This document shows positions 31,975-60,518 of a stretch of DNA of 64,000 nt, one piece after another. The DNA is from Entomortierella parvispora E1425. Taxonomy: Eukaryota > Fungi > Mortierellomycota. How positions within the stretch are numbered: the first letter of the stretch is position 1; the number at the start of each line of letters is the position of its first letter. Under the pieces are notes generated by a model. The model saw only the letters and a program-made list of their open reading frames with translations. It did no database searches and had not been told where the DNA came from. Both the position numbers and the translations under genes were made by a program. The stretch is taken from the NCBI GenBank assembly GCA_020891255.1, contig BQFW01000009.1, positions 1,054,001 through 1,118,000 on the forward strand. Direction: 5' to 3'.

Positions 31975-34124
31975 ATGGAAGATATAGTCACCAAACCCCA
32001 ACGTACCTTTCTTCAAAGCCTCAAGGAGAATAAGGGCCTCCTCCTGGCGATCGTCTCTTTCGCTCAGATGCTTGACATCATCAACGTTGCTAGTGTCACC
32101 ATTGTTCTACCAAAAGTAATGGTAGACGTTGGATACAAGGTTGATCAGCTCCAATGGTAACAAAAAAAGTCAGGGTTGCTCCATTCGCTCCATCCCACAG
32201 TGCACCCTCTCTCTGCCCTTGGCTTTGCTTCACTTTCTTGATACTCAACAGTCATATTTCCTCGTTTCCTACATGTATACATTCAGGGTCTCATCCGCTT
32301 ATTCCCTCGCCTATGGCGCCTTCCTCTTGTTGGGAGGTCGTCTCGGAGACCTGTTCGGACACCGCAACATCTACATCCTGGGTGTCACCTGGTTCTCGAT
32401 CTGGTCTATTGTCAATGGATTCTCTCATTCCCCTGTCATGCTGTCGATCAGTCGCGCTCTTCAAGGCATGGGTGCTGGCTTCACCGTCCCTAGTGCCCTT
32501 GCCATCTTGACTACTACCTACCCTGTCGGACCCGAAAGAACACGCGCGCTCAGGTACAACCGAAATAATCTCGCAAGAAATTTTCGACTACGCACAATTT
32601 TTTTCGACCATCTGACAAATATTCTACACCTCTTTTCCTTCACCAACATCGCCCTTTTCACCATGTACATTGGTTCCTCGTCATGTGGGCAGCATCTTCG
32701 GCGGCACGGGGGCCGTTGGCTCAGTCGTGGGCGTTCTCATGGGCGGTATCCTCGGATCGACAATTGGTAAGAGGTCAACCAGCGATTTTTTTTTTTTTTT
32801 TTGTTGCCGAAATTTTCTCGACTTTCCTCACTTCCCCTTCTTTCTTTTGTTCAATCCGTTCTAATTTTTGCCTCCCGTCTTCTTTGAATTGGGTACTAGG
32901 TTGGAGATGGCTCTTTTACATCACTGGTATTATCGGCTCCAGCCTTGTCATTGCTGGCTTCCTCGTCATCCCTGCGGACCAGTCACAAGGAAAAGTGGAA
33001 GATCGACGTATCGATTTTATAGGGCTCACATTTTTCTCTGCGGGCATCGTCACGATCATCTATTACCTAAGTGAAGGACCAGCTTCAGGTTGGGCTGTAG
33101 CCAAGACCCTGACACCCCTCATCGTCGGCCTCGTCCTTTTGGTGGCGTTCGTTGTCGTCGAGTACAAGATCGACTATCCCATCATGCCCCTTCATATCTG
33201 GCGATCCCGTCGTCTCGTCGGAGCCTGTGCAACCGCACTAGTAATGATGGCGGCCATGAATGCTCATTTCTACTTCACCTCTTTGGCTTTCCAAAACGTC
33301 TTGGGATATTCTCCTCTTCGTACCTCCTTGGCGTTCATTGTCCATGGTGTTGGCGCCATCATTGGCGTCGGCATCCTGTCTGTAGTGGTGAACAAGGTCC
33401 GAACCAAGATCATCATCATTGTCGGTTGGTTGTTTCTGATCGCTTCCGGTGTCCTCTGGGCCCAGCTCAAGGCCGGCAACTCATACTGGTCCGTGCCATT
33501 CCCAGCCCTTATCTTGAACCTGATCGCCATGGTCTGTATCTGGCTTTGTTGCCAGATCAACTCGGTGGCAGATGCTGCAGATGAGGACCAAGGTGTCGTC
33601 GGTGCAGGTGAGATGGATGAACTCATTGAGGAGCAATTGCGCGTGGTTATCACCTTCTTTGCGTGCAATAGTTAACACGGCATGTTCTTCCACTTTTGTT
33701 TTGTCTTTCTTTCTCAAAAGTTTACAACACTTGCCTTCAAGTGGGAGCCCCCATTGGCATCGCCATTTCCAACATTGTCGCCAATGACAAGAACTCGCCT
33801 ACAGCCGTAGGTGCTCAATTGTTGCCTGGTTACCGTGATGCCTTTTACTCGTACGTTGTCCTCGCTGCCGTCGGATTGGTCGTGACCCTCATTGTGAATC
33901 CCAACAACGATTCTTTCAAGAAAGGAAAACAGCCGGATATCGAGCAAAAGATCGAAGAGGAGGATGACGCCACCGAGATCAGAGTTCCTGCTCCTTTGAA
34001 CAATGACAAGGAGGAGATTCAAGAGAGTAACATTTATGAGCAGACATCGAGCAAAACAATCGATTCCGCCCCCGCGACGGTCTTTGAGGGATCAAGTGCC
34101 TCCCTGGAGAAGCCAATTCATTAG
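31975..34124 (+). CDS. MFS1: DHA2-type (14-TMS) MFS drug/metabolite efflux transporter, 5 exons
   Basis: SFAQMLDIINVASVTIVLP, motif A GGRLGDLFGHR, SRALQGMGAGFTVPSALAIL, GWRWLFYI, PIMPLHIW, ADEDQGVVGA|VYNTCLQVGAPIGIAI; introns 32157-32286, 32554-32692, 32767-32899, 33608-33720. Confidence 0.92.
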
Positions 34125-34270
34125 AGAAGGAAGGGTGCTTTTCGCCTTTTTTTTTTTTTTTACATCTAAATAATAATTCCAGGTGCTCATTTAACATTTT
34201 TTTGTGTCTATTTTGTCGGATATTTCATGAGCAACTTCAAAAGAATAAAGCTTTTGGCACTTCTACAGCA

Positions 34271-36161
34271 CTACACTGCAGAAGCAGCGGCAGCTGCACA
34301 TTCTCGTTTGTAGCGCTCCGACTCCTTTTGTGGAAGGACTTCAATGGTACCGCGCTTTGGTGCTTTAGGCAAGAATGTCGCCTGAGGTCGATAATTACTT
34401 CCGCGGAGACTGGACCTTTGCTTGATAGAATCGGGTATGAGATTGAAAACAGACCATCTCAGGCATCTCTCGACGAATGTCTATCCGATTAGATGAAAAA
34501 AGGGTCCTTTGTTGAGGAGATGCTGTTCTAATTTGGAAAAGAGAATCTCCTTGCTCAGGAAAGCTGGATCATCAAACTCACCTGTCCGTAAATAATCTTT
34601 GCATTGAAATGACTAAGGTCATACTGCTCCTTGACATGCTGCGCAAGATAAAGCAAGCATACAGGGTTGTTAGTCTCGCCGTGTTACATTTCTAACCTTT
34701 TTTCCCCTGTCCAACATAGAGTTGATTGGTAAAATAGATTACCGAAAAACGTTGCGCCTTAAAGTCACTCAAAGCAAAGTCGATAGCCGCTGGTGAGAGG
34801 GAGGTGAGTTCATAAAGGCAACTACTCAAAATAATGGCATCTTGCAAGGCGTTGACAGCACCCTGGCCTGCGCTGGGAAGCAACTTGTGCGCAGCTACCC
34901 AAGCCAACAAAAAAAAAAAAAAAAAAAAAAAAAAAACGTCCGCCAATTAGTTCATGGTCTAGAACAATGTTTCCATCCTGTCTTAGCCGAAGAAAGTTTT
35001 ACCATCTCCAATAAGGACAGTGCGGCCATGATTCCAAGTTTGAAAAAGCTTGTCGTCAAAATAGGTCCTGGAGATGGTGTCCTGTGGCGTCAGATTGATT
35101 AGGTCTCCCAGAGTCATGTTGCCGTACGGCACTTTGAAGTCTTTTACATCCTCAATCATGGCACCATTGACTTTGGGGCCCCATTCTACATTTCTAAACT
35201 TTTCCTTGTCAGATTGCTCTTGTGAGGACAATTGAGCAACCACAATCCAAGCAATTCGATTGTCGCGAAGGTTGAAAACACTCCAAGTGTACTGAGTCCC
35301 TTGCCCGATGATAGAATATTGAACAGACTCGTCGTTTTCGGCGTACGGATGCACCTTAGGATCCAAAGGCTCTGTCATGCCCAAGAGACTGACGTAACCT
35401 CTACTGATCTGTTGTGCATCCTGAGCCGGGAGAATATTTTGTTCCCGCATAGACTTGTACAGTGACTCACGGACTTTGCTGTAAGCACCGTCTGCTCCCA
35501 CAAGAATATGACCCTTATGAGAGGAGCCGTCCGCACAATGGATCGTGACGCCCTCGCTGTCCTGTTCCGTGGAGATGACCTTGACACCATAGTGGATACG
35601 CTCGACAGGAACTCTAGAAAGAAGCAAGTCGTAAAGCTTGGGTCTTGCAAAGAGCATGAACTCGTACCCCATCCTAATGAGTCGGTAGTCCAAGGACAAC
35701 AGTTGATCATTAGTCAGGAGCCCACTGAATGACATGCCATGGTCTCTTTGTTTTCAATCAGCATACTCCTCGCGAACGGCGTCGGTGCGGAATTTGGCTA
35801 TGATCTCCATGTTTCCATTCATGACATTGCCAGACTTTCCTGGGAGTGCAATCTTCATAAAGTCCTCGTACAGGCCTGTTTGCTCCAGAGCTGGCAGGAT
35901 ATTGGCGTTCAAGCTCATTAGCGATCCTAGAAAAACAAAAAAAAAAAAAAAAAAAAAAAGTGAGTAAAAAAAAAATGGAATTAGGACGCCTTGGCCAAGA
36001 GACAGCCATCTTTTACCGATCGGCTTGACGGAGGCTGCACGCTCATAGATATCATATGGGATTCCAGCTTTGTCCAAGAGGATAGAAAGAAAGAGGCCGG
36101 CGATGCCTGCACCGACTATGAGAACCTTTGGTGGACTGAAAGGAGTCTGGTCAACAGTCAT
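34271..36161 (-). CDS. M1: group A FAD-dependent monooxygenase (FAD_binding_3 type)
   Basis: VLIVGAGIAG, ARPKLYDLL, ILVGADGAYS (DG motif), VLIGD|AAHKLLPSAGQGAVNALQDA (GD motif), C-terminal YRPQATFLP...PQK; all exons could be joined in frame. Confidence 0.9.
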
Positions 36162-36815
36162 ATCTGAGAGGTAGTTGAACAACTACAAGGGTATGGAAAG
36201 AAGGAAGGAAGGAAAGAAAGAGGAGTAAGAAGAGAGGAAAAGGAGACCAAGGGAAGTGGAGCCTCATTCAGTGCCTTCATCTCAAAACCTGTTTCTACAT
36301 CATGGGCTCCCACACCCATGGGTGTCGAAATGAACCCCATCAGACTTGCATCTCGGGCGTCTCCTTTTGCCACCAAAAACAAAATAATAAAAAAACGACC
36401 GCGTCAAAACGCGTGGCATCCTGCAGGGAGCACAATGAGCACAGCCATTAGAGAGGTCCTCATTGTTCTCTGTCTCTGCATCCTTTCGTTCCTCCATCAC
36501 ATTCACCTCCAGCATGCAATGAGGCGAGGTTTGGTGCGCCCATCTGCTCTCAAGTCGTGGGACATGTTCCTGCGTGCTCGATTGTGCGACCATGCGCCAT
36601 TTCAATTTCCAAAGTACTGTACAGTGCTCTCCATCGACGCAATATTCAGGTCCTTCTTTCGTCACCAGTCCTCTCGACCCCTGCAGAACTACTATATCTC
36701 TGTCGACGGCACCCTCGCAGCTCGATGCCGGGTCTAGAGATGAGTAAAGAATATCGCTTCTTTAGAACTGCACCAGAATTTATTTTTCGCTCTAAAGCCC
36801 TGATCATAGGGCCAA

Positions 36816-38907
36816 TTAAACAGCTACCACAGGTGCAACGGCGGGCGACACATCCTCCGCGGCAGCAGCCTGGCTCTTGAGGGCCTCCTCTTCTCGCTTC
36901 TTCTTTTGTTCTCTCTCGTAGCGCACGGATGGCTTTTGAGGGAGAAGATCTATCTTGCCTCTTTTGGGGATAGGAGGAAGGAAGGCCACCATAGGTCTGT
37001 AAGCAAACCCCTTGTGAATCTCCCTGCGTTGGATAGACTCAGGCATCCAGTTCAGGAGAACATGTCGAAGGATCCTCTCTTGCAAGGTCTAGCAAAGGAA
37101 ATGACCAATGCCGATTATTAGTCAGTCATCTATTATCTGGTCTTTACTTATGACTGCAAATATGCTCAACTGAGCTCATCGTACCTGACCATGGAGAATG
37201 ACAGCATTGATCTTGCTCTTTTCGTACAACTCTGCAACGTGATGGTAACGCTGTTCCTTAAAGTCCAGAAGCGTTTTGTGGATGGCATCCTTGTCCAAGG
37301 ACTCTAGGTCATACAGGCAGTTTGCCAAGACGACAGCGTCTAATAAGGCAATCAGTGTGAATAAACATGGGACGTTTGACATTGAGGATTGGAACTGGAG
37401 GCGGTCTATGTATTCTTACCTTGGAGAGCACATACTGCTCCCTGACCTGCGCTGGGAAGCAACTTGTGGGCAGCTGGTGTCATCGATAGGAGAGAAAAGA
37501 AAGATGAGAGAGAAATTAGTTCAACATTCTCTTGATTGCACCCGGAACAACAAACCCCAAGAATACAAGACAAAAACAGTCTACCATCGCCAATAAGGAC
37601 TGTCCTTCCATGTGACCAGGTATCAAACAGCTTTTCTTCCAAAAAGACCCTGGAAATATTGTCCTCAGGAGTGGCATCGATCAGATTGCCAATGGTTCCA
37701 CACCCTGGAACTTTGAAATCTTTGACTTGGTCAATGAATTCGGGATTGGATTCAGGACCCCATTCCGAGTTGCGAAACCTGATCCTCTCAAACTCTGCAA
37801 CCGATGCAATCTGATAGACAACAACCCAGCAGACACAGTTCTCTGGCATGTTGAACTCGGCCCACTGAGTAAATCCGAAAATCCGAACGGAAACAAACAA
37901 AAAAAAAAAAAGGTGAGCTTATCTTGTCTGTGAAGACGCAGAGCATGCAAAAATGAAAACTCACACTGAAGTTCGTGCCGCGTCCAATGACCTGGCTGTA
38001 GATGGAGCCTTCGCTCTTCAAAAAGGGGTATTGTTCAGGATCCATTGGATTCGTGGTACCAACCATGGCCAAAAAGCCTTTGTTCAATTCTTTGGAATCT
38101 GAGGGAGGAAGCAAGTTCTTCTCTTGCAGGGTCTTGTACAGCCCTTGCCTCACTCCACTATGGGCACCATCAGCGCCTACCAAGATATCACCATGGTAGG
38201 TGGTACCATCTGCGCAACGAATCATGACTCCTTCCTTGTTCTGAATCATGGACATGACCTTTTTGTTGTAGTGAATCTTCTCCGCTGGGACCTTTGACAG
38301 AAGCAACTGATGGAACTTCGGCCGAGCAAAGTTGAAATATTCGTATCCGATTCTAGTACATACCGCAATGGGCATCAGTTTCTTTTGGCGAAGGATAATA
38401 TCTCATTATTTCTGGTAAAAAGTAACGAATCTTACTCGCCATCCTTGTCAACGTTGCCGAACGAGGCAGCGATCTTCATGTCGTCGTACATGATGTTCAC
38501 TTTGTTACCTGGAAACGAGATAGCCTGTAGCTCATCCAGAAGGCCGATCTGCTCGATAGCGGCAAGGATGTTTGCTGTCAGGGACATGACAGACCCTAAA
38601 GTCGCATCCAAGAAAGAAAGGTTAAGGACGATTAGCAACCATGTGTGTAAGAGAGCGTGAATTCAAAAAAGGTAACCCCTTCTCTTTCCATCATACCAAG
38701 GGGTTTGACACTCGAGGCTCGCTCATAGATCTGATATGGGATCCCGGCCTTATCAAGAAGGATCGCAAGCATCAGACCCCCAAGACCGGCTCCTACGATC
38801 ATCACATGGGGGTTTTTGTCGTCACTGGTGTTAGGAAGTTGAGATGGGTATTTGATAGGGGAGTCGTCAAACTCATCGACAGGTTTGCGTGCGCGATGGG
38901 GGTTCAT
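36816..38907 (-). CDS. M2: group A FAD-dependent monooxygenase
   Basis: MNPHRARKPVDEFDDSP...VMIVGAGLGG, ARPKFHQLL, LVGADGAHS, VLIGD|AAHKLLPSAGQGAVCALQ|DA, YRPMVAFLP. Confidence 0.9.
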
Positions 38908-39226
38908 TTCGGGTTGGCGAGATGGAGAATGTTGTGAATGAGAGATGGGGGACAGAATGAGATGTTCTTTTCAGTTGAAAAGTCTGAGCACAAAGGAGAG
39001 CAAAAGAAATTGGAGGTTGGTGGTCCGATGTTGCACAGGGCAAAGGCAAATTACCTGTTTTTGTGCATGAGCAAGGTCTGTCCAGCATGTTGGCAACAGC
39101 AGCGCTGTCCTCTTCTCTCTGGAAGAGTCGCAGCAGCCACTGATGTACCGCGCTGGTGATGCATCCGAGGACCTTGACGACGCGAACGCTCTGACCTCTT
39201 CTCAGGCACGAACGCCACTAAATTTA

Positions 39227-40175
39227 GAGCCAGATAAAATTAGTGGTGCGCATCTAGTGGTGACCTCACCACTAGACACCACTAGACACCACTGGTTTTG
39301 GAACCCCTTTATTCATTCTGAATTCGATTCAACATGTAGGTGTGGTTGTATCTCTGCTTGGTATTGCAGTGCAATGGCCGACACGCACCCCTCGAACAGA
39401 TGAAAATGCGATGTGCTGCTCCACCCCTTCTGCTCGTTGATTGTCTCTTAAAACTACTCTCCTGGTGCCCCGATCAATGTGCAGTCCACATGTTTTGCAC
39501 TTTGGCATACTTCCTCTAAGCCCAACAACACTAACCGAGATACCCATTGGGTGGATCATCCTTTTCTGGCGCTGTAAGATTGTTGTCGCTGGGACAGGAG
39601 ACATCTCTGGTGGAGGGCTCATTACAACTGGTGTTGGAGGAGGGCTTAGTGCCTCTAGATCTGAAAATTCCAAGGACGGGTCTGGTGTGTCCAGGTCTGG
39701 GAATGAGTCTTGTACGCCTTCGTCTGGAGTTGAACCTCGCGCGCCGATATTCGATGAAGAGGACGTGTCGCTCTTCAGGTACCAGGCCGTAACAATATAG
39801 TACCCCTTGGGGTGAGTTCTTTTCAGGAACCAGCCACTTGACCATTGGTCTTTTCATACCGTCGTAAAAGAGAAAACGACCGAGTATGGACACTGTGCAG
39901 CAGAAGTGTCCGCCATTCCCATAAATGACGCACCCCAGATAGGCCTCTGGGCGGAGAGACGTGCAAGGAAAACAATGGAGGAGGAAACAATGGAGGAAGA
40001 GAGAAGGTGGCCAAAGAAGAGAAATAAAAAAAAAAAAAAGTGAGGAATTTTTATTGGCATGGAGTCTGGTGGCGCAGTGGACTGCCTAGTGGTGGTGCCT
40101 AGTGGTCTAGTGGTGCCTAGTGGTGCCTAGTGGTGGGGTCACCACTAGATGCACACCACTAATTTCCATGGCACC
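39227..40175. mobile_element. 949-bp non-autonomous Mutator/Foldback-like DNA transposon with 67-bp TIRs and 9-bp TSD
   Basis: TIRs 39227-39293 and 40109-40175 are reverse complements (core AAATTAGTGGTG(C/T)GCATCTAGTGGTGACC(T/C)CACCACTAG(A/G)CACCACTAG(A/G)CACCACT); CTAAATTTA flanks both ends (39218-39226, 40176-40184); no transposase ORF. Confidence 0.85.
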
Positions 40176-40269
40176 CTAAATTTATTTGATCCCTTCATAG
40201 CGCCCACGAGTCTACATGTATTGCATTTGTTTTACTTCAACCATAGAAGAGAGGAATCCGATGGGCCAC

Positions 40270-42228
40270 CTAAAGAGCAACGATGGGTGATACAGTGACA
40301 GAAGATCCGTCTTCTGCTGCAGCCTTATTCTTGAGCGCCTCCTCTTCTCGCTTCTTCTTTTGTTCTCTCTCGTAGCGCACGGATGGCTTTTGAGGGAGAA
40401 GATCTATCTTACCTCTTTTGGGGATAGGAGGAAGGAAGGCCACCATAGGTCTGTAAGCAAACCCCTTGTGAATCTCCCTGCGTTGGATAGACTCAGGCAT
40501 CCAGTTCAGGAGAACATGTCGAAGGATCCTCTCTTGCAAGGTCTAGCAAAGGAAATGACCAATGCCGATTATTAGTCAGTCATCTATTATCTGGTCTTTA
40601 CTTATGACTGCAAATGTGCTCAACTGAGCTCATCGTACCTGACCATGGAGAATGACAGCATTGATCTTGATCTTTTCGTACAACTCTGCAACGTGATGGT
40701 AACGCTGTTCCTTAAAGTCCAGAAGCGTTTTGTGGATGGCATCCTTGTCCAAGGACTCTAGGTCATACAGGCAGTTTGCCAAGACGACAGAATCTTGTAA
40801 TGCACATACAACACCCTGCCCGGCACTAGGGAGCAGCTTGTGGGCAGCTGAAGCCAGTTGATAAGGGATGAAGGAGATGAAGGAGGAACTGAGTCCAACA
40901 ATTCACTTCAAGGTGACATCAGAAGCACCATATCACCAAAAAAAAAAAAAAAAAAAAAAAAAAAACTTTACCGTCACCAATGAGGACTATACGACCGAAC
41001 GACCAAGTCTTGAATAGCTTCTCTTCCAAAAAGACCCTGCAGATGGTGTCCTTGGGAGTGGCGTCGATTAGATTACCAATGGTGCCACACCCCGGCACTT
41101 TGAAATCTCTGACCTGGTCAGTGAAGTCGTGGTTAGACTCAGGCCCCCATCCCAGACTGCTGAATTTGGTCTGCTCAGACTTTGTAGTCGATGCTATTTG
41201 GGAGACAACGGCCCAGCAAACGCGGTTCTCTGGTATGTTGAACCCGGCCCACTAAATAAACCCAAGGTATCAGGATGAAGGGAAAATATACAGTAAGCTT
41301 ATGATGCACTCAAAAGAGAAGGGTGTTGAATTCGATAATTACTCACGCTGTAGCTCGTGCCACGCTCAATGACCTGATTGAACGTCGAGCCTTCGTTCTT
41401 CAAAAAAGGATATTGTTCAGGATCCATTGGGTCCGTGGTGCCAAACATTGCCAAAAACCCTTTTTTCATCTCTACTGCATCTGAGGATGGGAGCAGGTTC
41501 TTCTCTTGCAGGGTTTTGTATAGACTTTGCCTCACTTCACTGTACGTGCCATCGGCGCCCACCAATATATCACCGCGGTAAGTGGTGCCATCATCACATT
41601 GGATAAGGACTCTCTCCTCATTTTCATCCATAGACACGACCTTCTTGTTGTAGTGAATCTTTTCTGCTGGGACCTTGGATAGGAGCAGCTCGTGGAACTT
41701 TGGCCGAGCGAAATTGAAATATTCGTATCCGATTCTATTTGTACACAACAATAGAGAGTCAGTTCTTGGTGAAGAATCGAATCCCATGCCGTCGTTTCCG
41801 ATGCAAATCAAGAGTCTTACTCGTCGTCCTTGTCAACATTACCGAACAAGGCAGCCACTTCCATGTTGTCATACATGATATTCACTTTGTTTCCAGGAAA
41901 CGACATGGCCTTGAGTTCATCCAACAAACCGATTTGCTCGATCGCCGCCAAGATGTTTGCCGTCAGGGACATGATAGATCCTAGCAAAGGACCAAAAGCG
42001 TAGAATTAAGAACCACAATTGCAAGAAAATATGGACTAAAAAAAAACTATCACTTCCTCCCGTCATACCAAGCGGCTTGACGCCTGAGGTTCGCTCATAG
42101 ATCTCATAAGGGATCCTAGCCTTATCAAGAAGGATGGCAAGCATTAAACCTGCAAGGCCGGCACCAACTATCAACACGTGTGGGGCTTTGTCGCCACTGT
42201 TCCTGGAAAGCTGAGATGAACAGTTCAT
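40270..42228 (-). CDS. M3: group A FAD-dependent monooxygenase
   Basis: VLIVGAGLAG, ARPKFHELL, LVGADGTYS, VLIGD|AAHKLLPSAGQGVVCALQDS; the start is probably the in-frame ATG at 42228 because the ancestral ATG appears lost. Confidence 0.87.
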
Positions 42229-43627
42229 AGATAAATCGTTGAACAGTTTGAAGGATTTGCGGGTAGGGTGGGGGTTGTTGTTTGGCCGAAAGGATGGAGA
42301 ATGTTGGGATGGGGGTGAAAAGAAAAGATATAATGGGCAAACAAGATGTTCTCTTTTCCTGAGAAGACTAAACACAAGAAGAGCAAAAAAAAAAGGGAAA
42401 TTGAATGGTGGTCTGATGGTTGCACAGCATAGCAGCAAACCAATGGTGCTGTACAAGTGCAGGCCTACAGGGGGGCAATTAGCAAGAGGAAGAGGTTGTG
42501 GGCAGCAACAATTCTCGTATTTCAGTTATCCTGTCTGAACATGGCGTCAGGAGAGTACTTCATTAACCCAGAGTTGAATGGACGTCGCAACCAGCAAGTG
42601 AGCTGCATTCGTGCATTCGTGCATTCGTGGTATGAATGGGCGATGAAGTGGACAAGACGCTGCCCGAATCCTAAAACTTCGTTTCTCTCCAGAGTTCTTT
42701 GGATGCCCAGTTGTTGGCAACACTTTTTGTTCGTCCTCCCCATGTAGTGCGTTCTCTTCGTGGCACCCATCAGTTTGAGGCTCACCACTGCAGGCAAACT
42801 CGCTTTCATCTCCACGGATTCAAATCTGTGCAGGACAAATGCTTTCCCCGACAAAAAGAACGGGATGGACAACGTGCAGTGCTCAGAATGCATCTATGGC
42901 CAACCTCTCGGGCGCCCTGCAAGCGTAGTTGCTCTGTCAACACGTTTCGACTTTCAAGAAAGCAACACCAGCGTTTTCGTGTTCAGCTACGGATCTCCCT
43001 CTCTCCTCGTTCCTGGCTCTCATCGTCTTGTCGACTCAACATGAATCCCATCATACCGCAAACCCATCAGTGAGATGCACTTTAGCCAGCCGACCAAGGG
43101 GGGAAGAGTAGAAGGGAGATCAAGCTCACTCATTTCTGTTCCTCATGTCAACCTTATTTTCGATTCGCATGGGCTCCTACGATGTCCATACTGCTTTTTT
43201 CTACTGGGTTCAGTATGCATGTTTCAGGACTTCACTAGCAGACTGCGAGGATGCATCATCTACAAAGGAAAAATGGCCCGTCGCGTGTCACCCTGCGGGT
43301 CGGCACGCGTACATCCAACTGAAACGCCGACAAAAAGGCCCTGTAGGTCCGCTTCGCCATTCTTCTCATCTTGCTTCACATCCATCCGCAACATGCAATC
43401 AAGAACGGTGCACCAATCTGCTCTCGAGCAGAACGCTGCAGGCCCAGGGAAGGAAAAATTGCTCTGATTGTGCGACCATGACCGACCGTTCTCTTTTCAA
43501 TTGCAACGGTCCATGATAGCTTGCTCTTTTGCCGCCCCCTCCCTTCTTCATCTCTCCTCATCTCCTCATCTCTCATTTCGCTCATCCTTCAACCATTCCT
43601 CAACTTCCTCATTACTCTGTCACCATC

Positions 43628-45878: not shown

Positions 45879-46084
45879 TGGTTATAGGATGAACTTGTAG
45901 CTCTTTTTTTTTTTTTTTTTTACAGAAACGGCCCAATAAGGCAAACAATGATGGATCAATGGCATCTGAACGAGAAATAAAAACGACAACGACAATCAAA
46001 CGTTTCTTCCCATGTCATTAAAGATTCATTATCACGAGTACAGGGACGGATGTGATCGAAGGTCAAATCATAGCATGTCGTGCC

Positions 46085-46240
46085 ATATCCAGTTCATTCT
46101 TCCTGAGTTCAAAGGCGGTTGCTGGAGCAGAGTCTGATGGTTCTGTTAGTTCACACGTGCCTCTTGACTGTGGATGGTCCGGGTCGTGGGCACTGCTGCC
46201 TGTCTTCCCAACATCCGACTCATAACCCTGCAGCTCCGCC
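46085..46240 (-). pseudogene. Relic of the 3' end of an MFS2-like gene
   Basis: Encodes DVGKTG...HDPD...ELTEPSDSAPATAFE versus MFS2 DVEKTG...HDPD...ELTDPSDSAPATVFE; GTTGCTGGAGCAGAGTCTGATGG is shared with ~52088-52110. Confidence 0.8.
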
Positions 46241-46534
46241 TTTGCATTCCTGTCATCTTGCTTCACCTTCATCTGCAGCATGCCATGAGGTGAATGCTCC
46301 CATCTGCTCTCGAACACTGTCGACCTGCCTCTGCTGCCGTGTCCAAGAAGAGCAAGCTGCTCTAGTATCACTGTGCGACCATGGCCTTGCCATCTCTTTT
46401 CAAATGCAGCTGGCCACAATTGCCTGCTCTCTATTTTTTCCCCAACACGTCCTCCCATCCTTCTCATCTCTCTCCATCCCTCATTCCACTCATCCTTCCT
46501 TCTTCCTCAATCTCCTCGATCTTGCAACATCGTC

Positions 46535-48782
46535 ATGAACCCTCACGACCCCTCCCAGCTCCCCAAGAAAAGCGACGGAAAGACGCCCCATGTTATGATT
46601 GTTAGGTTTTGGTGCTGCGAAAGTTCCTGCTGCAACACTCAAGCAGTAGACTGACACACTATGAAATGCCCCCACTCTAGGTAGGTGCAGGTATAGGCGG
46701 ACTTCTTTTGGCCATTCTCTTGGACAAGGCCGGCATCCCTTACGAGATTTATGAACGTTCTCCAGAAGTTAGGGCCCTTGGTAAGAGGCAAGCCCGACTT
46801 TTTTCGACATTTTGAAGTGACATCGAACAATTGTGAAACTTAACTCTTGTTCTTGGCCTCTCTAGGATCTGTTATGTCCTTGAATTCCAACATCCTGGGT
46901 GTACTGGAGCAACTTGATCTCTATGAAGATTTCAAAAAGATTTCGCTTCCCGGCAAAGAATTCAACCTCTTCTACGGCGACATGAAGCAAATCGTTAACC
47001 TTGACTCAAGTGATGTCGAGGAAGCGTAAGTATCCATTCGCAAATTGTTTAAGCAATGGCAGGTATACCATGACGACAATCCCTCTGATCAAAGAATATT
47101 CCATAATAGTGTTGGGTACGACTACAGACTGTTTGCAAGACCTGACTTCTATGCACTCCTTCAGTCCCGTGTGCCTACGGAAAAGATTCACTTCAACAAA
47201 AAGGTTCTCTCCATGCAGCAGAACAAGGAAGGTGTCATGATCCGCTGCGCTGATGGTACCACATACCATGGAGACATCTTGGTCGGTGCTGATGGGGCTT
47301 ACTCTGCTGTTCGACAACACTTGTACCGCACCTTGAAGGACCAAGGTGTGCTCCCGGAATCTGACAAAAAGGATCTTAGTAAAGCATACATTTGCCTCGT
47401 CGGAGTGACTTGTGTACTTGACCCGATCAAATACCCCTATGTCACGAAGGAGCACGCCATCCAGCATTCAATGATCGGGAAAGGCACTCGCTACACGGTA
47501 AGCTTGCGGTTCAGTATACGCTCGTTCACTCGTTTATCGGGATCCTTTGGTCCACAAGTCGCTCAACTGACAAACCTCAATGACTTTCTAGTGGACCATT
47601 TTTAACGTCCCCGGGAATCGAATCTGTTGGGTCGCAGTCGCACAGTTGGCCACTTTGGCAGAGGCAGAGTTGCTCAAGTTCCGCAACTCGGAATGGGGTC
47701 CCGAGTCCAATGCTGAAATGATTGCTGAATGCAAGGACTTCAAACTGCCCATTGGAACAACACTGGGCGACCTCATCGACCAGACTCCCAAGGACAAGAT
47801 ATCCCGCGTGTTTTTGGAAGAAAAACTGTTTGAAACGTGGAGTCACAATCGAACGGTCCTCATTGGAGACGGTAAGCATACGATTGTTGATCGATGGTGC
47901 CGATGAGCAGAGGATACAAAACTAATACCCTCAATTCTCTTGGTGCCACAAATGAATCACCATCATAGCCGCCCACAAGGTATACCATTTTATCCAAGGA
48001 TGATCCAGAAGAAGCATCAACTGGACTATACCTCTTTCTAACCTGTATCTTCTTTGAACAACATATAGCTCCTCCCAAGTGCAGGTCAGGGTGCCGTGTG
48101 CGCCATGCAAGGTAAAAGGCACTTGAACAAACTGCAATGCCAAGCATCTCATTTATTCATACAAGTTACCTCATTATATACATGTACAAAGATGCCGTGA
48201 TCCTTGCTGGTTGTCTTTATGACCTACCCTCCCTCTCTCCGGACTCGATCCAGGCCGCACTGCAGGACTACCAAGATCAACGCTACAGGTACGAGTGAAC
48301 CCCGGAGCTGCAAGATAAAAAGGCAAGCTAACCTGAAGCTGAATCACTAACCGGATGATGTTTCTGTGCGATAACCGTTTAGCCATGTCAAAGAACAATT
48401 TGAAATCAGCAAAACCAATGCCATCTTTTTGCATGGACAGGTAACTGGAGGACATGGAAGAACCGAATAGTGCTCTAATGATCAACTCAAGCCAAATAGT
48501 TGTCTAACTTCGTCGTCTTTTCCTCGTGTTCAGTCGCTATATGAAAGAATCATTCGTTACGCTGCCTTCAATCTCATTCCCAGGTCGATTAAAAACAAGC
48601 ATACTCTTCGAGGCGCGGCTTACAGACCTCAGGTCACCTTCCTTCCGAGAGCCCCCAAAAGAGGGACTGTCAAGGAGGTCCCACAAAAGCCCTCTGTCCG
48701 CTACGCCAGGGAGCAGGAGGAATCCAAAAAGACGGCTGCTGTTGAAGCGACGGTGCCAACGCCGTCCACCGAAGCTGTGTAA
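46535..48782 (+). CDS. M5: group A FAD-dependent monooxygenase
   Basis: Same exon structure as M4; shorter N-terminus MNPHDPSQLP; microexon 47969-47979; stop TAA 48780-48782. Confidence 0.9.
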
Positions 48783-49597
48783 TGGCTGGTATGATGTACT
48801 TGCCAGCTCACTTTTTACAGAAACAACCTAAAAGAAGATGAGGAGCCATGGAATATTGGAATGAGAAATAAAAATTGCAATCAACGTTTCGTCCAATGTC
48901 GTCTATCTCTCCCAATTGTCGACACGAGGACCCACAGTCACAGCGTGCCTATCTGCAGTTGCTCTTCTCTTTGGATCGCGGTGTGGATCCTGATCGTAAT
49001 CTCCTCACTCTGATCGCTCGACTCTCCTACGCCCAGACTCTTCCATCCCTCGACTCGTCAAAAGATGAACGATGAGCGGAAAGAGAAAAAACCTCACTCT
49101 TCCATCATCATCCCAAATCTGTTTTCGCTGTGGCATGGGCTCCCAACGGTGTCGCTTTTGCTCTTTGCTGGACATGCTTGATCATCTTCACCGGACCACA
49201 CCAGGCTATCTACCAAGAAAATGCGGGCCGCGTTCACGTCGCGTGGCATCCTGCAAGTCGACACGCGCGTTGCAAGCGATACACGTCCCTAGAAAGGCCA
49301 TGCAGCTCCGCCATTGCATTCCGCTCATCTTGCTTCAAGTCCATCTGCAGCATGCACTGAGATGAGGTGCACTCATCTGCTCTCGAACAGGACACTGTAG
49401 ACATGCCTCTGTGCCCAGGGAGGACAAACCGCTCTGATTGTGCGACCATGGCCATCTGTTCTCTTTCCAATTAGCGGTCCACAATGGCTTGCTCGATATT
49501 CTTCCCTCAACCCTTCCTCCCATCTCCCTCATCTCTCCATCCCTCATTCAAATCGCCATTCATCCATTCCTTCTGCCCTCGATCTTTCTCCATCGTC

Positions 49598-51850
49598 ATG
49601 AATCCCCACCGTGCGCCCAAACCTGTCGATGAGTTTGACGACTCTCCTATCAAGCACCCCTCCCAGCTTCCCAAGAACAGTGATGGGAAAACTCCCCATG
49701 TCATGATTGTAAAGTTGCAAAGTCCGTGGGATTTATCTTAGTACCCTCACACAGTAAACTGACGCCATCGTTGAATGCCATCACTCTAGGTTGGCGCAGG
49801 TATAGGTGGTCTGTTTTTGGCCATTCTCTTGGACAAGGCCGGAATCCCTTACGAGATTTATGAGCGTTCTCCAGAAGTCAGACCCCTTGGTATGTAGTAG
49901 ACAGAGCCGGATTCTTTCAATATCTTAGGCGATAAGTCATGCTAACGCCTGCTTCTGTTCTTGGCGCATCAAGGGTCTGTTATGGCCTTGAATTCAAACA
50001 TCCTGGGCGTACTGGAGCAACTTGATATCTATGAGGACTTCAAAAAGATCTCGCTCCCCAGCAAAGTCTTTAACCTCTTCTACGGAGACATGAAGAAAAT
50101 CGCTACTCTTAACACCAATGATGTGGAAGAAGCGTAAGAGCCCGTCCATTCAGACAGAGATAGCTCTACTATTAAGAGAAAACTGATCAAACATCATTCT
50201 TTAATATGATAGTGTCGGGTACGACTATAGGCTGTTTGCAAGACCTGACTTCTACGCACTCCTTCAATCTCGTGTGCCCGCGGAAAAGATTCACTTCAAC
50301 AAAAAGGTTCTCTCCATGCAGCAGAACAAGGAAGGTGTCATGATCCGCTGCGCTGATGGTACCACATACCATGGAGACATCTTGGTCGGTGCTGATGGGG
50401 CTTACTCTGCTGTTCGACAACACTTGTACCGCACCTTGAAGGACCAAGGTGTGCTCCCGGAATCTGACAAAAAGGATCTTAGCAAAGGATATATTTGCCT
50501 TGTAGGAGTAACATGTGGACTTGACCCGATCAAGTACCCTTATGTTACGAACGTGGACTCTGTCCAGCATTCGGTGATTGGAAAGGGCACTCGCTACACG
50601 GTAAGCCTGATTTTCTGTATCTCCTGGATCACAAGTCGCTCAATTGACAAACCTCAATGACTTTCTAGTGGACCATTTTTAACGTCCCCGGGAATCGAAT
50701 CTGTTGGGTCGCAGTCGCACAGTTGGCCACTTTGGCAGAGGCAGAGTTGCTCAAGTTCCGCAACTCGGAATGGGGTCCCGAGTCCAATGCTGAAATGATT
50801 GCCGAATGCAAGGACTTCAAACTGCCCATTGGAACAACGCTGGGTGATCTCATTGACCAGACTCCCAAGGACAAGATATCCCGCGTGTTTTTGGAAGAAA
50901 AACTGTTTGAAACGTGGAGTCACAATCGAACGGTCCTCATTGGAGACGGTAAGCATACGAACGTTGATCGATGGTGCCGATGAGCAGAGGGTACAAAACT
51001 AATACCCTCAATTCTCTTGGTGCCACAAATGAATCACCATCATAGCCGCCCACAAGGTATACCATTTTATCCAAGGATGATCCAGAAGAAGCATCAACTG
51101 GACTATACCTCTTTCTAACCTGTATCTTCTTTGAACAACATATAGCTCCTCCCAAGTGCAGGTCAGGGTGCCGTGTGCGCCATGCAAGGTAAAAGGCACT
51201 TGAACAAACTGCAATGCCAAGCATCTCATTTATTCATACAAGTTACCTCATTATATTATATACATGTACAAAGATGCCGTGATCCTTGCTGGTTGTCTTT
51301 ATGACCTGCCCTCCCTTTCTCCGGACTCGATCCGAGCTGCGCTCCAGGACTACCAAGATCAGCGTTACAGGTACGAACGCACGCAAACTGTAAGGAATCT
51401 AATAGGATGCAGCACTAACAGGATGCATTTGTGTGGATCATACTCTCTAGTCACGTCAAAGAGCAATTTGGTATCAGCAAGACCAACGCTATCTTCCTGC
51501 ATGGACAGGTAATCAGAGAACATAGAAAGGGCGAATGTAGTTGTAGAGGCCAGCTCTTGTAAAATACTTGTCTAACTTCCCCATCTTATCCGCATGTACA
51601 GACGTTGTCTGAGAGACTCATTCGTTACGCTGCCTTCAATCTCATTCCCAAGGCGATTAAAAACAAACAGTCTCTCAGAGGTGCGGCTTACAGACCTCAG
51701 GTTACCTTCCTTCCGAGAGCCCCCAAAAGAGGAACTGTCAAGGAGGTCCCACAAAAGCCCTCTGTCCGCTACGCCAGGGAGCAGGAGGAATCCAAGAAGA
51801 CGGCTGCCGTTGAAGCGACCGTGCCAATGCCGTCCGCTGAAGCTGTGTAA
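49598..51850 (+). CDS. M6: group A FAD-dependent monooxygenase (near-identical to M4)
   Basis: MNPHRAPKPVDEFDD...; exons and most introns almost identical to M4; microexon 51046-51056. Confidence 0.9.
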
Positions 51851-52048
51851 TGGCTGGTATGATGAAGTTGCCAGTTCTGCCTTCAGCGCGACAGTAAGAT
51901 CAATAATTTTTTTTTAGGAAACAACCCAATAGACGGACAATTGCGTTTCTTCCATGTCATTAAAAGATTCATTATTATAAGTATTGGGAAGGGATGTAAG
52001 TGAAAATGGTGGCATGCCATGCCATATGCCATATCTAGTCTCTCCTTG

Positions 52049-54257
52049 CTACCGAGAGGAAGTGTCGCTTGAGCCTCCTTCAAAGACCGTTGCTGGAGCA
52101 GAGTCTGATGGATCTGTGAGCTCATATTGCTCCACGTGCTTCTTGATTGTGCTTGCATTGTCGGGATCGTGGACATTGCCCTCAATATCGCCCGTCTTTT
52201 CAACATCCGAGTTAGTGCTCTTGAGATGATCCGTGTTGGGATTGACTATAATGGTCACGACCAATCCAACAGCAGCGATGATAGCGTATGTGTAGAAAGC
52301 ATCGCGATAGCCTGGCAACAGCTGAGCACCGACAGCAAAGGGCGAGTTCTTGTTATTGGCGACAATGTTGGCAATAGCGATACCAATTGGGGCTCCCACT
52401 TGGATACTCGTATTAAAAACTTTTTTGAAGAGAGAGAGAAAAAAAAAGGTGTATGCTGTGTTAATATTGCCTTTTTTTTTTTGCCATAATATGACAGCGA
52501 AGTCCCAGATGTCTTGAATTAAGAGAATTTTGTTTTTGACTTACTTGCACCGACGACACCTTGGTCCTCGTCTGCAGCATCTGCGACTGAGTTGATCTGA
52601 CAGCAAAGCCAAATGCTGACCATCCCAATGGCATTGACGATGAGGGCAGGGAAGGGCACAGACCAGTACGAGTTGTCGGCCTTGAGCTGGGCCCAGATGA
52701 CACCAGAGGCGATAATGAACAACCAACCCACAATGGTGATAATCTTTGTTCGGACCCTGCTGATGGCCACAGACAAGACACCGATGGAGGCCATGGAAAA
52801 AACACCATGGGGAATAAAGGCGACAGAGGCATGAAGGGATCCGTAACCAAGAACTTCTTGGACGGCCAAGGAGACGTAGTAGAAATGAGCATTCAAGGCG
52901 GCCATCATGATCAGTGCGGTTGCGCAGGCACCGACGAGACGACGGGATCGCCAGATGTGAAGGGGCATGATGGGATAGTCAATCTTGTACTCAATAAACA
53001 CAAACACCACCAGCAGGACGAGACCGACCAACAGGGGCGCCAAGGTCTTGGCTACGGCCCAACCAGCGGTGGGTCCTTCACTCAAGTAATAGATAATCGT
53101 GACGATCCCGACCGTAAAACAGCTTACTCCCATAAAATCGATGCGTCGGTCTTGCACGTTTCCGTGTGCCTTGTCTGATGGGATGACAAAGAAACCAGCC
53201 GTAGCCAATATGAAGCCGATGATACCAGTGATATAAAAGATCCATCTCCAACCTAGTACCCAATTCAAAAAAGACGGGAGGCAAAAATTAGAACGGAATG
53301 AACAAAAAAAAGAAGGGGAAGTGAGGAAAGTCGAGAAAATTTCGGCAACAAAAAAAAAAAAAAATCGCTGGTTGACCTCTTACCAATTGTCGATCCGAGG
53401 ATACCGCCCATGAGAACGCCCACGACTGAGCCAACGGCCCCCGTGCCGCCGAAGATGCTGCCCACGTGACGAGGAACCAATGTACATGGTGAAAAGGGCG
53501 ATGTTGGTGAAGGAAAAGAGGTGTAGAATATTTGTCAGATGGTCGAAAAAAATTGTGCGTAGACGAAAATTTCTTGCGAGATTATTTCGGTTGTACCTGA
53601 GCGCGCGTGTTCTTTCGGGTCCGACAGGGTAGGTCGTGGTCAAGATGGCAAGGGCACTAGGGACGGTGAAGCCAGCTCCCATGCCTTGAAGAGCGCGACT
53701 GATCGATAACATGACGGGAGTGTGAGAGAATCCATTGACGATGGCCCAGATCGAGAACCAGGTAACGCCAATGAGGTAGATGTTGCGGTGCCCAAACACG
53801 TCGCCTAGGCGACCTCCCAATAGCAAGAACGAGCCATAGGCAAGTGAATAGGCAGAGGATATCCTATTGTTTGATCAATGGAGTTGAGGATGTATTGCCC
53901 TGTTAGAGCTGCTCTTGATGATAACGCTGGATGGGTGCTGATCGACGGGATGAGAGAGCAAGAGGGGGCGGGATGATTGAGAGGAGGGGGGATGGGTGAA
54001 CAAGTAGGAGCAGTCAAAACGTTCCATTTCTGGCTCAAATAAAAAAATATAAAAAAAAATAAAAAAAAAACGAACCATTGAAGCTGATCGATCTGGAACC
54101 CAACGTCGCGCATTACGTCTGGTAGAACGATGGTGACACTGGCCATGTTGATGATGTCAAGCATCTGAGCAAAAGAGACGATCGCCAAAAGCAGGCCCTT
54201 CATCTCTTGGATACGCTGACGAAGAGGCAATCGAGGCTTGCCTGTTGAGATGTCCAT
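52049..54257 (-). CDS. MFS2: DHA2-type MFS efflux transporter, inverted paralog of MFS1
   Basis: GLLLAIVSFAQMLDIINMASVTIVLP, GGRLGDVFGHR, GWRWIFYI, PIMPLHIW, GAPIGIAIANIVAN; same intron positions as MFS1. Confidence 0.92.
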
Positions 54258-54277
54258 TGCAGGTGATAGAACGGAGC

Positions 54278-54390
54278 GTGTGGGTGTGAATGAGAGTGTG
54301 TATGAAAGTGTGTATATCTTTTGTGTGTGTGGTGTGGGTGTCTTTGTCGTGAAGGAGTGAGTGGGTGTGTATGTGTTTGCGTGTGTGCAG
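54278..54390. repeat. Imperfect (TG)n/(CA)n microsatellite immediately upstream of MFS2
   Basis: Run of gtgtg/gtgtgtgtggtgtgggtg units just 5' of the MFS2 ATG. Confidence 0.55.
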
Positions 54391-55006
54391 TTAGGGTGAT
54401 GAAGACGGATACACGTTTTGCATGCAAAAGATCTTCTCTTATTACAGCTGACCTTTATACAAAGAACATAAACCAGCCGAGCCGCGAATGGATCCCCGCT
54501 CTAGAAATAAGGGATCCGATCCGTGAGGCCCAGGGAGCCAGGTGTCTGACGTGGTCCTAGACCAGAAGAGTGCTGTGGTGATCAAGATGCTGAGCTTGAA
54601 AAAAAAGCCATAAATGAGCAATGAGAGGCGCGTCTTGCGCGGACAGTCAAACAAAAGCTGCTGATTGCCCCTGGCCCTGTCGGGAGTTGACTCAGCCGGA
54701 ATTGCCGAGTACTGTATTTTTATCGCTCCTCTTCTTCCCTTTCACAGTCAGGCACAGGGGCATGCATCTTGATCACCGCGCAGTTTGCGCCTCTCCCTCC
54801 CTCTCCCGATCAGCTCTCTCCCGATCAGTCCTCACCCAAAGAAGCTCCCAATGCCAAAACCAGTTAAAGGATGACCGCAGTAGGCGCTGAAATTTACTTC
54901 TTGGAAAAAAGCTACGTAACCCCGATCCTCATTCACTGGAGGAGAACAAAACAGGTTTTTTTTTTGGAGGCAGGGCAATATGGTTCATCTCTATCGCTGC
55001 GACGGT

Positions 55007-56976
55007 TTACAGTCTGCGGATACATGCTCGCTCCTCGATCCTCCTTTTCTCCTCCTCGTACCTCTTTGAAGGCTTTTGCGGCAGAATCTTGCCCGTGCCA
55101 CGTTTAGCTGCCTGGGGCAAAAATGCGATCTGAGGTCTGTACGATGGATCCTTGCTCCAATCTCGCTTCATCACAGAGTCCGGAACCCAGTTGAAGACAA
55201 TGTATCTCAAGCTTTTCTCAAAGACCGTCTATGGATAGGAATGAGATCAGAAAACGAATTCAGTCTTGTATTGCAATTGACGGCGCGATCGATCTCCCTT
55301 TTTTTTCTCATCACGCATACTTGGCCGTGCACAAAGAGCGCATTGGTCTGACTGGACTCGTAGAGGGTTTTAACATGTGGATAGCGCTGCTGTTGATAGT
55401 CTTGAAGAGCTCTCTTGATCGAGTCTGTGTCCAGAGATTCGAGTTCGTAAAGACAGTTGGTCAAGATAACAGCATCTAATAAGGCAACCAGTGTGAATAA
55501 ACATGGGACGTTTGACACTGAGAATTGGAAATTGGAGGCGGTGCATGTATTTTTTACCTTGCATGGCACAGACAGCGCCTTTGCCAGCGCTTGGGAGGAG
55601 CTATACAAAGTACGCAGGCACAACATGGTCAATGGATATACATAAGGGTCTTGACAAAAAAAAAAAAAAAAAAAAAAACTACGCTTCCATTCTCACCTTG
55701 TGGGCAGAGTCTCCCAGCAAGACTGTTCGTCCATGTGTCCAGCTCTCAAACAACTTGTCGTGAAGGTACACTCGAGAGATCTTTTCACGAGGTGTCAAGT
55801 TGAAGAGATCCCCGAGAGTGCCACCACAAGGGGCTTGAAAGTCCTTCACCTGCTCCATCATCTCTTCACAGTGTTCTGGTCCCCAACGACGACCGCTAAA
55901 CTTTCCATTCTCAGTTTTGGCAACAGTTGTATACTGGGAGATAATGACATAACAAAGACGATTGTCGCGCACGTTGAAGCATGTCCACTATGAACCAGTC
56001 AATGTCAAAGTCAGCACCTGCTGCTCAGTTATACAACTTTTCAGACTGGCAGATCAAACTTACAGAATAGGGCGTTCCGTCTCCAATAACTTGCAATTGA
56101 TCAGTGTGTTGGTTTTTGACAAAAGGGTATTTCTCAGGATCCACACTGTCTGTCGTGCCGACGAGGCACGAATAGCCTATGTTCAGCTCTATGTCGTCGG
56201 CGGGGGGCAAGATATCCAGGTCTTTAAGTGTCTTGAGCAACTCTCTTCGCACTGCACTGTAGGCCCCGTCAGCACCCACGAGAATGGACCCATGATGGGA
56301 AGTCCCGTCTGCAAAATGAACTGTCACCCCATCCGTGGTCTCCTCAGATGAGACAAACTTCTTGTTGAAATGAATCTTGTCGGCTGGGACCTTTGCCTGA
56401 AGAAATTCGTAAAGTTTGGGACGGGATAGTAAGCGATAGTCATACCCTGTCCTATAAGCAACGATCAGAACAAGAGTGGGGAGGCTCTTTAGATTCCTAT
56501 ATCCAATTGAAGGGCAGTGCGGTACAGTGATGAAAAAAAAAAAAACATTACAATCTCTCATCCAAGGTAGGCACATCAAGGATCTTTTCCATCTCGCCGT
56601 TCATGATCTTCAAGCTTTTGCATGGCAGAGAAATAGACTTGAACTCCTCGTATATACCAAGCTGCTCGAAGGTAGGTAGGATGTTGGAGTTCAGCGCCAT
56701 TATCGAGCCTAGGGTCAGAACGTGAATGAAGGAGATCGAGTCAGGTTATTCCTCCGCTTTTGGTCGCGCCTTTCCATGCTTGGCAAAACTCATCAAAGGA
56801 AGGTAAAGACGCATACCTATAGTCCTGACCTCTGGGTCCCTCTCAAATATTTCGTATGGAATCCCGGCCTTGTCAAGAAGAATGGCGAGAAATAAGGCAC
56901 CGATACCGCCGCCGACTATTAAAACTGAAGGAACTGGTCGTTCTGTGGCATGTGGATATGAAGGGTGGGCGGTCAT
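55007..56976 (-). CDS. M7: divergent group A FAD-dependent monooxygenase
   Basis: MTAHPSYP...VLIVGGGIGALF, SRPKLYEFL, LVGADGAYS, VLLGDSAHK|LLPSAGKGAVCAMQ|DA, YRPQIAFLP. Confidence 0.88.
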
Positions 56977-60159: not shown

Positions 60160-60518
60160 ACATTACAACAACACTACTATCAGCCACTACAGTACCTGCC
60201 TGCCTCCGCGTCCGTTAGACAAGGCACCTATACCATACTTAGATTTGAATAGGCCAACCCCACTCCTGCTTGCTCCTTAGTTTGTACATCATGCAAAATA
60301 ACCCTGGGTATAATAAATCAGTGACTCTTGTCTGTGGGAATGGTGTTGCTTGCAAAGGAACTGGAGCAATCCAAAGACCTCTTTCGTCAAACAGCATTCA
60401 CCACCTTTCGAAACAGAACAAGAGGCAAGGATCACGACATTGGGTAAAATAACTTTTTTCTTTAATGCTGAATGTTGAAGCAATAAAGGAGAATAATGGA
60501 CGAATAATTATCGAATGT

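Follow-up and report, generated by a model that had tools for sequence, protein, structure and literature searches.

A 64,000-nucleotide stretch of the genome of the soil-dwelling fungus Entomortierella parvispora strain E1425, announced previously (PMC8759367), was analysed in this work (hereafter the window; positions 1054001-1118000 of contig C9, in a 38.9-Mb assembly of 20 contigs). Between positions 31975 and 56976, the window carries an island of seven flavin monooxygenase (FMO) genes, designated M1 to M7, and two pump genes of the major facilitator superfamily (MFS), designated MFS1 and MFS2, in the order MFS1(+), M1(-), M2(-), transposon, M3(-), M4(+), MFS relic, M5(+), M6(+), MFS2(-), M7(-). 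Our results indicate that this locus is probably an ordinary birth-and-death hotspot of a large family of group A flavin monooxygenases, widespread among Mortierellaceae, with active gene conversion, located at an older transporter locus.

The ancestral core consists of M7 and MFS2, co-oriented in this order of transcription, and a second pump paralogue, a configuration shared with Gryganskiella cystojenkinii together with the abhydrolase and eIF3a genes of the right flank. Six further enzyme genes of three more lineages lie between the convergent pumps, namely M1 as an old singleton, M2 and M3 as relatives of an array found on contig C2, and M4-M6, which represent a recent tandem triplication with one step that copied the last ~50 codons of MFS2. 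Ongoing conversion, in tracts of 0.4-1.3 kb displaying 97-100% identity, reshuffles M2/M3, M4/M5/M6 and, across 20 kb and in inverted orientation, MFS1/MFS2; moreover, a miniature inverted-repeat transposable element (MITE) has inserted upstream of M2. The resulting array would diversify the substrate range, similarly to the 'blooms' of detoxification and catabolic genes.

Phylogeny, divergence and synteny of the island

Homologues were sampled as the best 120 matches per search. In the enzyme tree, M7 grouped with the re-modelled G. cystojenkinii protein BGZ83_005311 (support 100/100), both displaying GKG in place of GQG; M2 and M3 formed a pair (100/100) inside the clade of the C2 arrays, next to EMPS_00993 (98/95), a clade that expanded after the split from G. 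cystojenkinii; and M4-M6 constituted a tight group (100/100). M1 appeared as a long-branch singleton, and its grouping with M4-M6, as claimed in the initial annotation of this DNA, was recovered in the best tree, although with a support of just 66/72. The monophyly of M1-M7 observed in a first tree (96) was rejected as a sampling artefact of a length limit of 448 aa or less, and it was gone once full-length paralogues were added. Regarding the pumps, MFS2 grouped with BGZ83_005312 of G. cystojenkinii (support 99) and MFS1 with 001760 of the same species (support 84); since each pump has its own orthologue there, the pumps must have duplicated before the two species diverged.

Divergence at synonymous sites (dS) was 0.09 for M4/M6, 0.32 for M4/M5, 0.68 for M2/M3 and 0.72 for MFS1/MFS2, whereas M1 was saturated versus every other copy, with a proportion of synonymous differences (pS) of 0.83 against M4. 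The ratio of nonsynonymous to synonymous divergence (dN/dS) ranged from 0.04 to 0.23 wherever measurable (0.15 for M2/M3, 0.10 for M4/M5). Judged at the sequence level, the integrity of the nine genes and the purifying selection on the measurable pairs show that they encode working proteins.

The contig JAAAIG010000280.1 of G. cystojenkinii displays the order MFS(+), small gene, MFS(-), FMO(-), FMO(+), abhydrolase, eIF3a(-), and its abhydrolase and eIF3a genes are colinear with positions 58866-63509 of the window. An FMO relic was sought between M7 and the abhydrolase gene, the site of BGZ83_005310 in G. cystojenkinii, and none was found there; when the left flank was compared with contigs of G. 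cystojenkinii, only noise was obtained. Between two of the G. cystojenkinii pump genes, at 1448-3652 of the same contig, lies a gene of 734 aa that has no counterpart in the window and encodes a delta-endotoxin N-terminal domain (PF03945, Cry-like).

Gene conversion, tandem duplication and the pump relic

Sharply bounded conversion tracts were delimited from sliding identity, and two of them are listed in Table 1. Over codons 120-180, MFS1 and MFS2 displayed a pS of 0.06, compared to ~0.5 elsewhere, and the corresponding value for M2/M3 over codons 360-420 was 0.00. Over 1.3 kb, the identity between M4 and M6 is 99-100%, although their promoters are just ~65% alike, whereas the identity between M4 and M5 is a mosaic, and the M5 protein differs by 7% from both M4 and M6. 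In addition, the N-terminus of M2 is 87% identical to M4-M6, versus 43-58% in most other stretches.

The MFS relic matches residues 476-524 of MFS2 (tblastn E 7e-7), with 71% and 84% nucleotide identity in two blocks, and its position and strand relative to M4 are those of MFS2 relative to M6; no MFS relic was found downstream of M5. The 71-84% identity to MFS2 suggests that the relic-carrying duplication and the M5 split are of the same age, and that M4 and M6 became nearly identical afterwards. The tandem amplification previously proposed for the island is real for M4-M6, with a unit that once included the 3' end of the pump, but the seven enzymes are not one amplified unit.

Characteristics of the monooxygenases

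The encoded enzymes had been described as group A flavoprotein monooxygenases, an assignment upheld by their profile scores, flavin adenine dinucleotide (FAD) fingerprints and predicted fold. The PF01494 (FAD_binding_3) scores were 88.9, 83.9 and 87.9 bits for M6, M1 and M2, respectively, versus a cut-off of 22, within an overall range of 84-95 bits, while single exons alone score under this cut-off. All seven models carry the three FAD fingerprints, VG(A/G)G(I/L)(A/G)(G/A), LVGADG(A/T)(Y/H)S and GD(A/S)AHKLLPSAG(Q/K)G. In M4-M6, the AAHK of the FAD-binding GDAAHK is encoded on an 11-nt micro-exon, and these genes look broken when it is left out. Of the 120 public models for homologues in the first search, about two thirds lack the GDAxHK..P..GQG stretch, and some of these are also partial. 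It is plausible that gene predictors skip the tiny exon encoding GDAAHK..GQG in several array copies, hence the deficient public models, and annotation pipelines may be skipping such an exon in this family.

The AlphaFold model of M6 (predicted local distance difference test, pLDDT, 85.2) displayed a two-domain fold of the p-hydroxybenzoate hydroxylase type. Its top Foldseek matches were HpxO, NicC, TrlE, MNX1, 3HB6H and tetracycline destructases (top-hit probability 1.00), with template modelling (TM) scores by target of 0.73-0.84 and ~20% identity to the best Protein Data Bank matches. The family has no characterised close relative, all NCBIfam equivalogs scored far below cut-off, and a simple hydropathy scan of the enzymes revealed no membrane segment apart from the Rossmann strand-helix. 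By analogy with these structural relatives, each enzyme is predicted to act on small aromatic or heteroaromatic compounds as a soluble hydroxylase that has a single component and depends on FAD and NAD(P)H.

The proteins also display a C-terminal extension of ~70 residues with a family-wide YRPQ..FLP...RG...PQKPS.RY motif. The two C-terminal types distinguished in the initial annotation are real, one of them being VFNLIP...SLRG..YRPQ in M1 and AFNLIP...SLRG..YRPQ in M4-M6, and the other LLNWMP...YRPMVAFLP in M2/M3 and VFNWVP...YRPQIAFLP in M7; however, M2, M3 and M7 do not form a clade, as M2/M3 fall in the C2 clade and M7 in a third lineage. Following the family-wide motif, most members end in a small hydrophobic dipeptide, -AV in M1, M2 and M4-M6 and -AL in M3, while M7 ends in -RRL; many homologues also end in -AV, -VV or similar.

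Characteristics of the pumps

MFS1 matched the Pfam MFS_1 profile with 170.9 bits, well above the cut-off. Its best NCBIfam match was TIGR00711 (DHA2), covering model positions 5-411 of 485 with 196.6 bits (E 7e-58), a score under the 230.2 cut-off of this bacterial model. DHA2, the family named in the initial annotation, is thus the closest named family, even though the score remains below cut-off. A crude Kyte-Doolittle scan at a strict threshold revealed 10 strong peaks per pump. Fungal DHA2 members also move non-drug substrates, and consequently export of the enzyme product is not implied.

A pump-specific search identified just two close relatives of this type in the genome, MFS1 and MFS2 themselves, both at the locus, and none of the next relatives genome-wide (63% identity and below) lies beside an enzyme array. 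Likewise, the other arrays of the enzyme family examined in this genome showed no neighbouring pump of this kind; the arrays fetched from Mortierella sp. AD010 and Linnemannia schmuckeri contain no transporter; and in M. antarctica, E. beljakovae and E. chlamydospora, each with a single-copy pump orthologue, the readable flank of this gene carries no enzyme gene. The only linkage that is conserved, in one other genus, is that of M7 and MFS2. As far as gene neighbourhoods indicate, the pump link is not a general property of the enzyme family, while a coupling between M7 and MFS2 is possible.

The monooxygenase family in the genome and in Mortierellaceae

A genome search with PF01494 favours other, stronger-scoring subfamilies and misses the array's own; the genome was thus searched with a family member. 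This six-frame search with M2 yielded at least ~63 separate loci, including arrays on contigs C2 (7 and 6 copies), C13 (3) and C5 (several) and a dozen more copies on C9, the latter with at least 12 family copies within ~200 kb. Members of the same family are also located at C9:1024212-1027019, ~27-30 kb before the window, and at C9:1149226-1149630, ~31 kb past its end. Given the many arrays of the family elsewhere, an island of seven copies is typical for it.

With a full-length relative as the query, 1659 database proteins were retrieved at E<1e-40, and every organism-named match among those listed belonged to Mortierellaceae; related clusters are also present in Ascomycota. Our literature search found no paper describing this Mortierellaceae flavin monooxygenase family. 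Apparently, Mortierellaceae carry a large and previously undescribed expansion of one flavin monooxygenase subfamily.

Soil and the surroundings of roots are rich in Mortierellaceae, which frequently harbour endobacteria. By analogy with the cytochrome P450 blooms of insects, a family-wide bloom (~60 copies per genome, rapid array turnover, purifying selection) might represent the main toolkit of the fungus for chemical defence or scavenging, directed at soil aromatics, antibiotics or toxins of bacterial partners, M7-MFS2 being the original enzyme-exporter couple that seeded part of the system; we regard this idea as speculative and rather improbable. The substrates of the ~60 enzymes, once known, could explain part of the chemical ecology of Mortierellaceae.

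The shared promoter motif

The initial annotation took a shared promoter motif as support for co-regulation. For this motif, TGTGCRACCAT, we found five exact sites in the window rather than six, versus 0.07 expected, only four of which are in sense orientation and upstream of start codons, at 160-190 bp from those of M3-M6 and within a partly conserved block. No site is located upstream of M2, M7, MFS1 or MFS2, even with one mismatch allowed. Genome-wide, the motif occurs 130 times, compared to 16 for a reversed-pattern control, and about 10 of the 100 sites listed (of 130) are near family members, the others being located elsewhere. Its absence from both pumps, M2 and M7, together with its genome-wide abundance, removes the motif as support for co-regulation of enzymes and pumps. 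We regard TGTGCRACCAT as a promoter element that is common in this genome, that was passed on in part when promoters were duplicated, and that has no bearing on enzyme-pump co-regulation; it appears to constitute a general promoter or transcription-factor site in E. parvispora.

Gene models, transposon and surroundings

Gene models were built with family profile hidden Markov models derived from database homologues; six-frame matches were chained and GT-AG introns were picked by profile score. All nine genes, that is, the seven monooxygenases and the two pumps, displayed unbroken frames, canonical GT-AG introns and full coverage of the family profile, in agreement with the gene order, strands and boundaries described initially. 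Introns break these genes up, leaving only fragments in bacterial-style lists of open reading frames (ORFs). Four models are identical in sequence to GenBank entries for E. parvispora E1425 (EMPS_06997, 06998, 06999 and 07003). The GenBank counterpart of MFS2, EMPS_07004, comprises only the last 319 aa of the complete five-exon model; intron 1 of MFS2 (212 nt, weak donor GTTCGT) may be behind this truncated call. The placement of each pump tail-to-tail with a monooxygenase was also corroborated, with 146 bp separating the stop codons of MFS1 and M1, and 198 bp between the ones of M6 and MFS2.

Table 1. Coordinates of the features of the island, as positions in the window.
Feature	Position	Strand	Description
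MFS1	31975-34124	+	DHA2-like MFS transporter, 5 exons, 544 aa; model equals the EMPS_06997 sequence
MFS1/MFS2 conversion tract	32492-32892; MFS2 side roughly 53260-53660	+ (MFS1)	97-99% identity through two introns vs 60-86% elsewhere
M1	34271-36161	-	Group A flavin monooxygenase, 6 exons, 464 aa; 100% identical to EMPS_06998
M2	36816-38907	-	Flavin monooxygenase, 7 exons, 506 aa; 100% identical to EMPS_06999
M2/M3 conversion tract	36919-37319; M3 side from near 40373	-	98-100% identity, last ~0.4 kb
Transposon	39218-40184		Non-autonomous DNA transposon, 0.97 kb; 57-nt terminal inverted repeats (93% complementary); 311 bp upstream of the M2 start codon
M3	40270-42228	-	Flavin monooxygenase, 6 exons, 489 aa; 82% identity to M2
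M4	43628-45878	+	Flavin monooxygenase, 10 exons, 498 aa; 99% identity to M6; micro-exon 45081-45091
MFS relic	46001-46233	-	3' end of MFS2 (last ~50 codons and 3' flank), downstream of M4
M5	46535-48782	+	Flavin monooxygenase, 10 exons, 483 aa; micro-exon 47969-47979
M6	49598-51850	+	Flavin monooxygenase, 10 exons, 498 aa; 100% identical to EMPS_07003; micro-exon 51046-51056
MFS2	52049-54257	-	DHA2-like MFS transporter, 5 exons, 533 aa
M7	55007-56976	-	Flavin monooxygenase, 7 exons, 471 aa; upstream of MFS2 on the same strand
TGTGCRACCAT sites, sense	42416-42426 (M3); 43469-43479 (M4); 46372-46382 (M5); 49439-49449 (M6)	- (M3 site)	Upstream of the gene given in brackets
TGTGCRACCAT site, antisense	36583-36593		Antisense to M1

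The transposon is flanked on each side by a 9-bp direct repeat, CTAAATTTA, and related partial copies were found on contigs C6, C14, C12 and C1; Pfam detected no domain in the ORFs within it. We classify this element as a Mutator-like MITE, the putative superfamily being assigned by the length of the flanking repeat alone.

Among the long ORFs of positions 1-31900, Pfam identified TYW1, Anp1, an ABC transporter, a DEAD-box helicase, a JAB protein and a SWIRM/Myb protein, while the right flank carries the abhydrolase and eIF3a genes. Neither the long ORFs elsewhere in the window nor the syntenic right flank yielded domains of polyketide synthases, nonribosomal peptide synthetases or terpene synthases, in a scan that short or heavily split genes could escape; the lack of a synthase claimed in the initial annotation agrees with this result. 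The ABC transporter is of full size (two ABC_membrane and two ABC_tran domains; 16802-20602, +), lies ~11 kb upstream of MFS1 as a third transporter gene close to the array, and belongs to a family that includes efflux pumps. At 3645-3949 (+), a 209-aa ORF without Pfam match aligned weakly to the monooxygenase profile (positions 96-187; E 2.5e-8 and 1.4e-7), and this could represent an old relic or a distant FAD protein. Finally, an open frame of 848 aa at 11594-14140 (+) has no Pfam domain and is located where the GC skew is strongly negative.

Assessment of alternative explanations

The scenario put forward in the initial annotation, in which an FMO-plus-pump unit was duplicated in inverted orientation and then amplified in tandem into a co-regulated module that modifies and exports xenobiotics or bacterial toxins, is in our opinion unlikely. 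Both pumps do lie tail-to-tail with an enzyme of matching C-terminal type, but the two supposed units cease to be homologous in their DNA beyond the MFS stop codon, and the split of MFS1 and MFS2 pre-dates the species split. M1 joins M4-M6 in the best tree, but at 66/72, and the M1/M4 pair is saturated (pS 0.83) compared to the pump dS of 0.72, while M2/M3 and M7 come from other lineages; on these grounds, an inverted duplication of the unit was not borne out. The tandem unit formerly held part of a pump, although the piece that was copied is a dead 3' fragment. Similarly, M7 and MFS2 have remained adjacent in G. cystojenkinii, where three pumps and two enzymes cluster, yet a pump of this kind stands beside no other FMO array examined in the genome, nor in the arrays of two other species, and the single-copy orthologues of three further species have no enzyme gene in the readable flank. 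The closeness of the pump to DHA2 efflux proteins and the presence of antibiotic-inactivating Tet(X)-type enzymes among the structural relatives would fit such a module; the promoter motif, missing from both pumps, M2 and M7 and common genome-wide, speaks against it. A further explanation is that the enzymes perform tailoring steps in a cryptic secondary-metabolite pathway, with a synthase outside the window and pumps exporting the product, which we consider very unlikely. MFS exporters are common in biosynthetic clusters, and the fungal group A tailoring enzymes TropB, SorC and PhqK are among the structural matches; nevertheless, the ORFs scanned across the 64 kb and the syntenic locus of G. 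cystojenkinii yielded no synthase, methyltransferase, P450 or cluster-type regulator, the surrounding genes have housekeeping roles (TYW1, Anp1, DEAD helicase, JAB, SWIRM/Myb, eIF3a), and the family makes stand-alone arrays elsewhere. Moreover, seven near-redundant paralogues, two of them at 99% identity, are easier to reconcile with dosage or substrate diversification than with a stepwise pathway. Least probable of all, and to an extreme degree, is that the repeats are an assembly artefact caused by duplicated or mis-joined contigs, as the 99-100% identity of M4 and M6 over 1.3 kb could suggest: the copies differ in flanks, promoters and introns, the M5 protein is 7% off, only M4 is followed by the relic, another species displays a colinear right flank, the GenBank annotation gives the same genes in the same locus-tag order, and the assembly comprises just 20 contigs for 38.9 Mb.

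Some considerations also weigh against the birth-and-death hotspot that we favour. Conversion blurs both the dS timing and the tree, leaving the order of events within the array uncertain, and closer orthologues of M1 or M4-M6 may lie beyond the best 120 matches per search. The putative biochemical role is drawn from the fold and from distant relatives. In addition, the three pumps and two enzymes found within 25 kb in G. cystojenkinii could reflect selection for linkage instead of inherited synteny. The locus alone provides no evidence for a new kind of system; it does constitute a clean example of fungal gene-family expansion, with a duplication breakpoint clipping a neighbour, movement between arrays on different contigs, and frequent conversion, also between inverted pumps 20 kb apart.

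Comparison with known systems

The array proteins have the same fold (Foldseek E 1e-25 to 1e-21, TM by target 0.7-0.84) as the solved group A monooxygenases HpxO urate hydroxylase (3rp8), NicC 6-hydroxynicotinate 3-monooxygenase (5eow), salicylate hydroxylase (5evy), 3-hydroxybenzoate 6-hydroxylase (3HB6H; 4bjy), the fungal MNX1 (8r2t) and the Tet(X)/tetracycline destructases, and share with them the FAD motifs (GxGxxG, DG, GDAAH), a single polypeptide and the lack of transmembrane segments. They differ from these enzymes in being only ~20% identical to them and below every NCBIfam equivalog cut-off, and in the ~70-residue C-terminal extension, which has no counterpart in the solved structures. 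As for the pumps, the 14-spanner DHA2 drug:H+ antiporters (TIGR00711, EmrB-like) constitute the best-scoring named family for MFS1.

The locus of G. cystojenkinii (BGZ83_005310 to 005317) resembles the island in the orthologous MFS(-)/FMO(-) pair 005312/005311, corresponding to MFS2/M7, in a convergent second MFS gene and in the shared right flank. In contrast, it harbours two enzyme genes and three pumps, with nothing similar to M1-M6 between its convergent pumps, and it displays an extra FMO gene, 005310, and a different left flank, with Endotoxin_N and dynamin genes. The arrays of Mortierella sp. AD010 (JAAAUR010000565.1, 8 copies), L. schmuckeri (JAAAUQ010000681.1, 5 copies) and contig C2 of E. 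parvispora belong to the same family and likewise consist of 5-8 adjacent copies with no core biosynthetic gene. These arrays run head-to-tail on one strand with no pump seen alongside, whereas the locus studied here mixes four lineages in two orientations between two pump genes.

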